A stretch of DNA of 64,000 nucleotides, from the NCBI GenBank assembly GCA_964304625.1, contig OZ199840.1, forward strand, positions 3,882,490 through 3,946,489. The letters are read 5' to 3'. A program made the position numbers and the translations under genes. Under the pieces are notes generated by a model. It searched no databases, was not told where the DNA came from, and was given only the letters and a program-made list of their open reading frames with translations. Origin of the DNA: Kudoa neothunni. Taxonomy: Eukaryota > Animalia > Cnidaria. Below, piece after piece: positions 56,012 through 57,110 of this stretch. How positions within the stretch are numbered: position 1 is the first letter of the stretch; every line of letters starts with the position of its first letter.

Positions 56012-57110
56012 ATGACTGGATCCCATTCTACCCAAAGTAGTGACATATTGCTTAAACCAACACAATTATGCTCTCAATTCGAAAAAAAAATGAAAAGGTA
56101 TGATGCCTGTTGTTGGCCCCTGAACGTGCTTATTTGCTCATATAGGAAACTAAAAAATCGTATATCTGCTCAGAACTCTAGAGAAAGACGTAGAAAGCAA
56201 TTGGAAAATCTACAAAAAACAATTAACGAGAAGGATCAATATATAACATTGTTAGAGTGTAAGATCGGTGAACTCGAGGTTGTAAATGGCGCCCTTTTAA
56301 AGATTGTGGCTCCAACAGTCAGTTTGGATGAACTTTGTTCACAAAAACTCACTGGAAATAACAATAATCACAACCTATCGCCCAACACTACTAATAATAT
56401 CAGTTCTGCGAACTACGGCTGTGGTTCGTTAAATTACTCCAACCTAGTATCAGGAGTTTCTCCATGTAATTTAGAAGCGATTACAGGCGTATCCAAGAAT
56501 TGGATAACATGGGAGATGGTCTTGATGCTAAACATGTTGGGTTTTTTAACATCTGCAGTCAACCACTTCGCAGCACTGACTACGATGACAACTGTTTTAA
56601 ATCATCAAATACTGATCTATTGGAAACATTTAGAGAACTTTCGACTTCCAGATTATCCGCTAACCGTGGAAACCATATTGAAGTACCAACAGATAGATTA
56701 TTAATCTCTTGTGATTAATAATCTGTAAATAGGTACAAATGGAAGCCCTTCAAACGGAAATCGTCGAATCCAGCGTCTCCTCAACCAATATCAAAGATTC
56801 TCCAGAACAAGCCGATAACAACATTGGCTCCACAGCAATATTGGGCTCATGCGGAGAAATATCAAAAGATGTCCCATCCACTAACACCATTACTAATCTT
56901 AGCTCTATTCTACCACGTTTGCAACTCATATCCAATGAATCAGCCAACAACGAATGTTTTACCCGATCATCCTCCAATTGTTCAACCACATCGTTAGATC
57001 GTTTTCTCAGTGAATTGGGCTTTCCTAACCTAGACTCTAATGTTAATAACTTTTCCAATGGCGACGAACTATTTCACGAACTTTGCCCCTCCTACTTATT
57101 CAACCAGTAG
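56012..57110 (+). CDS. XBP1: X-box binding protein 1 bZIP factor; spliced-form frame stops at 57110, unspliced-form frame at 56997
   Basis: EKKMKR|KLKNRISAQNSRERRRK plus leucine zipper (intron 56098-56145). A second frame, joined by intron 56683-56732, ends DELFHELCPSYLF, resembling the XBP1s ELFP.L terminus. The unspliced frame has an HR2-like hydrophobic stretch WITWEMVLMLNMLGFLTSAV. An upstream exon is not excluded. Confidence 0.85.
56419..56474 (+). other. Candidate IRE1-type unconventional intron (56 nt)
   Basis: Hairpin cgaacta-CGG^CTG-tggttcg (56409-56428) and hairpin tgtaatt-TAG^AAGC-gattaca (56465-56485). Removal (56 = 2 mod 3) joins the bZIP to the XBP1s frame and removes that frame's upstream TAA at 56467. 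Confidence 0.55.

Follow-up and report, generated by a model that had tools for sequence, protein, structure and literature searches.

The gene described here occupies positions 56012-57110 on the forward strand of the window, by which we mean the whole stretch of 64,000 nucleotides that was analysed, an AT-rich sequence with about 31% G+C. The evidence supports its prediction as an XBP1/HAC1-type bZIP gene with a real two-frame switch. The predicted exon 1 (56012-56097, 86 nt) begins with the ATG at 56012 and ends in phase 2, and its junction with exon 2 reads ...MKR/KLKNR. The conventional intron between them (56098-56145, 48 nt, GTATGA...ATAG) fits the other introns of the genome in size and ends. 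The part of exon 2 that reaches as far as the candidate 5' cut (56146-56418) encodes a bZIP basic region and zipper (KLKNRISAQNSRERRRK...), and its frame, starting at 56147, matches Pfam bZIP_2 above the cut-off with an E-value of 1.4e-5. The remainder of exon 2 (56475-56682) is open in two frames, both here and in the single relative that was found, the contig L007. It is followed by a second conventional intron (56683-56732, 50 nt, GTACCA...ATAG), which lies in phase 0 of the spliced frame, and by the last exon (56733-57110), which carries an XBP1s-type C-terminus and in which the unspliced frame is open to 56995-97.

The genome that was searched is a 40.3-Mb assembly in four contigs, with introns of about 45-100 nt, and homology searches and folds were done exon by exon on unjoined sequence. 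Three bZIP_2 matches were found in the 40-Mb genome, and the gene in the window is the best of them; the basic regions of the other two are CREB/ATF-like and C/EBP- or PAR-like, respectively. No paralogue of the gene was found in the genome, nor was the nematode SL1 leader pattern. None of the sequence searches (word-based, HMMER and protein atlas) recognises the protein as XBP1, the protein atlas returning generic bZIP clusters only, all below 0.9. The assignment to XBP1 is instead made because of the architecture, namely the bZIP domain, the frame switch and a hydrophobic segment. We also take the RKLKNR...AQ basic region and the C-terminal ELF motif to be reminiscent of XBP1.

With regard to the reading frames, the bZIP frame meets a stop at 56702-04 when it is read without removal of intron 2. 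A second frame opens at 56470, directly after the TAA at 56467-69, and stays open to 56718. Intron 2 connects it to a third frame, which opens at 56733 and ends in ...DELFHELCPSYLFNQ, with its stop at 57108-10; in L007, a GTATTG donor is found in the same phase. It follows from this layout that the C-terminal exon can be reached from the bZIP frame only by a removal of 3n+2 nucleotides that ends at or after about 56470. The unspliced frame is itself open past the switch, over 69 codons in exon 2 and then over 88 more across intron 2 (about 157), a degree of openness that arose in 4.8% and 0.075% of trials, respectively, when the codons of the other frame were shuffled. In the upstream, single-coding part, the two other frames are closed. 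The unspliced-frame product contains a hydrophobic segment (56501-56560, WITWEMVLMLNMLGFLTSAV) that is conserved in P0001, the protein encoded by the relative, and that we liken to the hydrophobic region HR2 of XBP1u. As the frame is open and the hydrophobic stretch is conserved, RNA retaining the switch segment would be translated, as is the case for XBP1u, and the unspliced frame is predicted to be a real product. The first-pass annotation had proposed XBP1 with a UPR switch, and a bZIP gene with a frame switch is borne out by the bZIP_2 match, the frame layout and the non-random dual coding.

The sole relative, L007 (ENA ERZ795007), is a 524-nt contig of a metagenome assembly with approximately 1x coverage, and its protein P0001 is 57-60% identical to the protein studied here. 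A word-based search with the unspliced-frame exon returned P0001 only, and an exhaustive HMMER search of 1.84 billion representatives yielded P0001, one spurious long protein and nothing else. No match was obtained with the C-terminal exon as query, or when metagenomes were scanned by protein pattern and by a conserved 21-nt DNA pattern. Sampling of this lineage is very poor, with one relative among several billion searched proteins. The comparison with L007 reveals a sharply bounded block: nucleotide identity is 50-67% before the switch, 90-93% over approximately 56422-56550, including 90-93% over 56419-56474, and then about 50%, despite continued dual coding. Among codons specifying the same residue in both species, 15 of 16 are identical within 56408-56474, compared with 18 of 30 in the bZIP part; at the start of conventional intron 2, six of 12 positions are identical. 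The synonymous conservation and the fall in identity under continued dual coding point to a constraint on the RNA rather than to dual coding as the cause.

The candidate IRE1-type intron (56419-56474) lies largely within this block. The letters on which its proposal was based are present at their positions in the window, and the frame arithmetic also holds: cuts after G56418 and G56474 would remove 56 nt (3n+2), translated in the unspliced frame, and give ...NYG/SDYRR in the second frame. The 3' site was proposed to lie in a hairpin with a 7-bp stem and a 7-nt loop, UAGAAGC, and folding confirmed this structure (56465-56485, with 56465-71 paired to 56479-85 and the candidate cut UAG^AAGC at 56474/56475). 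The loop begins with U in place of C, as had been noted, while G3 and G6 are present. Its proposed yeast-like character was also upheld, since the loop, which is conserved in the relative, has the appearance of a CNG^ANGN-type IRE1 site. The L007 loop reads UUG^AAGC; G-1 and G+3 are kept and only a free position has changed, and a G-to-U substitution at 56486 extends the stem to 9 bp. In addition, second-frame stops reach the cut in both species, as TAA at 56467-69 here and as a TGA in L007 that ends on the first base of exon 2 after the cut, so that the junction cannot lie further upstream. In a wider context, the probability of the 3' hairpin is about 0.1 here versus about 0.9 in L007; its rival in the fold is a long-range helix pairing 56460-67 with 56507-15. 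A 3' cut site of IRE1 type at 56474/56475 is a well-supported prediction.

The predicted 5' site, 56418/56419, is weaker than the 3' site. It lies in a hairpin (56408-56429) with CGG^CUG in its loop, and the structure is stable, at -11.6 kcal/mol (z -3.8, with none of 200 shuffles equally good). The hairpin and the loop motif described for it are therefore real, whereas its loop departs from the expected size: the minimum free energy fold has 9 bp and a 4-nt loop, and the alternatives have loops of 6 or 8 nt, never 7. CGG^CUG fits the pattern C1/G3/G6, with the cut after position 3, only if the loop is read as 6 nt. In L007, the loop is CGA^CUU, in which G-1 and G+3 are both gone, and nowhere else in L007 does a loop hold an in-phase G. 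Pairing of the stem is 100% in both species, with a C-G pair replaced by U-G in L007. As conservation extends over the stem and all that lies downstream, the loop is the most variable stretch of the block. The 56-nt length of the putative intron depends on this site, whose key bases are absent from the only known relative. The chance occurrence of such motifs was estimated from the window, where both strands (128 kb) contain 12 hairpins with a stem of at least 6 bp, a loop of 6-8 nt and C-3/G-1/G+3, and 96 hairpins of the same dimensions with G-1/G+3 only. From the density of 12 per 128 kb, an in-phase hairpin with the full motif is expected within 100 nt of the other site approximately 0.003-0.01 times. 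The first-pass annotation had further joined the flanking exons by a basal stem (56398-56407 with 56496-56506). This stem is not supported: its pairing probability in the ensemble fold is 0.00, because 56490-56506 forms a hairpin of its own with a probability of 0.8-0.98, and it is broken at five of 10 pairs in L007 and is hence not conserved.

Folding predicts a long hairpin of about 123 nt (56428-56550), in which the body of the candidate intron pairs with the downstream exon. Its minimum free energy is -43.7 kcal/mol (z -5.9) here and -37.9 kcal/mol (z -3.7) in L007, and none of 200 shuffles was as good in either species. The consensus fold contains 45 pairs, one of which is compensatory (56432-56546, A-U to G-C); the remaining substitutions are located in loops, in a bulge (56511), or where they extend a stem. 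The limits of this hairpin match those of the block of 90-93% identity. It may extend further, to 56417-24/56552-60, as this additional helix forms in both species in a 200-nt context, with three substitutions and a register shift of one base. The 5' hairpin lies directly next to the base of the long hairpin, whereas the 3' cut hairpin is near the apex of the latter. In this fold, a helix of about 30 bp separates the two loops, one at each end, and they are not side by side as usual. From the conservation of the hairpin, the segment to be removed appears to be one strand of a helix whose other strand is the downstream exon. The predicted embedding of the switch in a conserved hairpin is new here. 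No Rfam family matched the switch region. A match to the mir-51 precursor at 56448-56529 (19.8 bits against a cut-off of 70, E 0.22) was discarded and reflects the helix 56451-67/56507-24.

Several other in-phase cuts were considered. CUG^UGGU (56421) sits in a perfect 7-nt loop, but its use would place a TGA where the exons join. A cut at CAG^GAGU (56453) combined with 56474 would remove 21 nt and leave the frame unchanged, and CAG^GCGU (56486), CUG^CAGU (56555) and UCG^CAGC (56570) are not conserved in L007. The last two are animal-type IRE1 motifs that lie 15 nt apart within 56553-56574, where the local sequence resembles, in our judgement, the human XBP1 intron; CUG^CAGU is moreover in phase with the 5' site, for a removal of 137 nt. 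An IRE1-type intron with boundaries other than 56419-56474 could take two forms, and several 3' sites may be used. In the first (56419-56555, 137 nt), the whole long hairpin would be the intron, cut at CGG^CUGU and CUG^CAGU. Both motifs have C-3, G-1, C+1 and G+3, like the animal XBP1 sites, the removal is in phase (3n+2), and the motifs are at the base of the conserved hairpin, with limits that are those of the conserved block. Nevertheless, CUG^CAGU is outside any hairpin loop and is CAA^CAGU in L007, and the second frame would be open over 56475-56555 for no reason, the chance of which we estimate at about 1/4. In the second form (56455-56474, 20 nt), the conserved CAGGAGU would be cut one base away from where a canonical cut would fall. 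Of the fully canonical motifs, CAG^GAGU alone is conserved in both species; however, it is at the edge of a stem and not in a 7-nt loop, and canonical cuts would give 21 nt, which is in frame, 20 nt being obtained only by the off-by-one cut. Such alternative boundaries are, overall, rather improbable.

A frame change without any removal of RNA is far less plausible still. The heptamer U UUU UUA (56542-56548) is in the right register of the unspliced frame for a -1 ribosomal frameshift, and the second frame is the -1 frame. In L007, however, the corresponding sequence is UUUUCUA, which is not slippery, and for this reason the register of the heptamer is probably due to chance. The T-to-C substitution that distinguishes L007 belongs to the compensatory pair with 56432 in the long hairpin. 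No strong structure was seen downstream of the heptamer, and frameshifting at this position would leave the opening of the second frame at 56470 unexplained.

The first-pass annotation had suggested searching the genome for the enzymes of the pathway, and both were found. The IRE1 gene (contig 1, 12206145-12207848) has Pkinase and Ribonuc_2-5A domains, the latter at 55.5 and 30.8 bits, and its best solved matches are IRE1 (E of about 1e-21), far ahead of RNase L. A 51-nt intron splits its KEN domain. The RNase motif TYRGDSV..LLRVIRNK/RNHF retains the Tyr, the Arg-Asn and the His. In the kinase domain, in contrast, HGA aligns in place of HRD in the catalytic loop and no DFG motif was found; from its sequence, this IRE1 is probably kinase-dead. 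RtcB is encoded by a many-exon gene on the minus strand of contig 2 (8481181-8484384), with at least nine short introns of approximately 45-100 nt. Eight of nine donors are GTA and one is GTTATT, and the acceptors are mostly TTTAG or AATAG. Among 17 sequencing runs that were found, four were examined, three with raw RNA reads and one with low-coverage genomic DNA. The three RNA runs have zero reads on the gene, a count that is no measure of expression; the genomic DNA run covers intron 1.

The introns of this genome bear on a further explanation, in which the removed segment is a spliceosomal intron running from the GT at 56428 to the AG at 56473-74 (47 nt) or 56476-77 (50 nt; 56428-56477), both in phase. 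It would usually be retained because its donor would be buried in helical structure, provided by the 5' hairpin or by the base of the long hairpin, and regulated retention versus removal would yield the two proteins. Both species have the GT and the AG at 56476-77 in phase, with GTTAAA or GTTAGA as the donor; the 47-nt form, with its AG at 56474, occurs in the window, and the 50-nt form in both species. A length of 47-50 nt is usual, the introns of the gene itself having 48 and 50 nt and those of RtcB about 45-100 nt. TTTAG is a typical acceptor, the GTT donor is known from RtcB, and neither alternative fold leaves G56428 or U56429 unpaired. A spliceosomal donor would also explain the freedom of the 5' loop to vary. 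Several observations nevertheless argue against it. We know of no XBP1, HAC1 or bZIP60 gene whose frame switch is made by the spliceosome. The putative intron is 90-93% identical between the species, against the much lower figure at the start of intron 2, and in each of them its reading frame has stayed open. Neither the GT nor the AG is independent evidence, since the codons and the IRE1 loop motif (G+3) explain both. The donor is GTT, whereas GTA is found in nearly all RtcB donors, in both donors of the gene and in the one IRE1 intron. Finally, the conserved hairpin with a 7-nt loop centred on the 3' boundary would be left without a role, and chance would have to account for the in-phase CNG^NNG of the 5' hairpin, against the low expectation derived above. 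We therefore consider a spliceosomal intron unlikely, albeit the most serious of the three alternatives.

Taken together, we assign a probability of about 0.5 to an exact 56-nt IRE1-type intron at 56419-56474. An IRE1-type switch is favoured by the 3' hairpin, located exactly where the second frame opens, by the maintenance of the unspliced frame and by the in-phase 5' motif; to our knowledge, every XBP1, HAC1 and bZIP60 gene uses a switch of this type. The exact 5' site is opposed by the relative's loop without the key bases, by the wrong loop size and by the unusual geometry. These objections are not fatal, because Ire1 specificity varies between species and a 56-nt Ire1 intron exists in Cryptococcus. 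In the mechanism that we propose, translation of the unspliced mRNA in the bZIP frame would yield a long XBP1u-like protein that carries the hydrophobic segment. IRE1 would most likely cut after G56474 (UAG^AAGC), within the conserved 3' hairpin loop, and, in this genome, may also cut the loop of the 5' hairpin after G56418 (CGG^CUG); both the identity of the cutter and the exact 5' boundary are what we infer. RtcB would then ligate the ends, and the loss of 56 nt would shift the frame to the one that leads, via the conventional 50-nt intron, to the C-terminal exon. The body of the intron would not be a free spacer, as it is predicted to pair with the downstream exon in the conserved hairpin of about 123 nt.

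On a more far-reaching reading, the conservation of the 5' stem, but not of its loop, would imply one of two things: that IRE1 reads structure instead of CNG^NNG at the 5' site, or that the 5' boundary is a hairpin-gated spliceosomal donor combined with an IRE1-type 3' end. This reading is part of a broader picture, which we put forward tentatively and regard as doubtful in its entirety. In it, the XBP1 switch would have been rebuilt in this lineage: the removed segment would form one side of a hairpin, conserved and about 123-145 nt long, the opposite strand of which encodes the hydrophobic segment, the IRE1 would lack the kinase catalytic residues, and the 5' site would be either read by structure or a spliceosomal donor.

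Among the branches of the unfolded protein response, XBP1/HAC1 splicing is the oldest. The unconventional intron of animal XBP1, which is cut by IRE1 and joined by RtcB, has 26 nt in mammals and 23 nt in fly and worm, and it is treated as fixed, with one of these two lengths and with twin 7-nt loops. If the switch described here, in a compact genome, has 56 nt or is otherwise rebuilt, it would constitute a natural experiment on what IRE1 needs for recognition and on how the exons are held for ligation, because it combines a long conserved hairpin, a relative without the canonical 5' bases and a probably kinase-dead IRE1. If the GT...AG boundaries are used instead, this would be the first XBP1-type switch handed over to the spliceosome.

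The gene resembles animal XBP1 in being a bZIP gene with a C-terminal activation part in another frame and a 3n+2 removal. Its unspliced product has a hydrophobic segment just past the switch, an IRE1 RNase and RtcB are present in the genome, and at the 3' site a stem carries a 7-nt loop, with a candidate cut after loop position 3. In contrast, the intron would have 56 nt, and the loops are CGG^CUG and UAG^AAGC instead of CNG^CAGC. The 5' loop does not have 7 nt and its motif is missing in L007. Animal XBP1 has a compact bifurcated stem, whereas the hairpins here are kept apart by a stretch paired with downstream exon sequence in the long hairpin. Compared with a retained short spliceosomal intron, the segment has an in-phase GT...AG at 47 or 50 nt, the modal size, and a frame that runs through it; it differs in its near-complete nucleotide conservation and in the IRE1-type hairpins at or next to both ends.

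The HAC1 intron of Saccharomyces cerevisiae has 252 nt, and its Ire1 recognises the motifs CNG^CNGN and CNG^ANGN in strict 7-nt loops, a specificity that varies between species (PMC6037481). The 3' loop in the window is likewise of the G^AAGC (CNG^ANGN) type, and the intron body is engaged in long-range pairing, as in HAC1. Unlike in HAC1, where the intron pairs with the 5' UTR and blocks translation, pairing here is with the coding exon downstream, and the unspliced frame is apparently translated; position -3 of the 3' loop is, in addition, U. The closest parallel in length is HXL1 of Cryptococcus neoformans, which has a 56-nt Ire1-dependent intron (PMC3154848). HXL1, too, is a divergent bZIP gene in which one short conventional intron precedes the unconventional one, although there is no sign of homology between it and the gene in the window outside the bZIP domain. 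The HXL1 intron has CAG at both borders and its excision has been proven experimentally, whereas the borders in the window differ and the candidate intron is read from sequence. A 56-nt IRE1 intron has therefore a eukaryotic precedent in HXL1, but it would be unusual for an animal XBP1.
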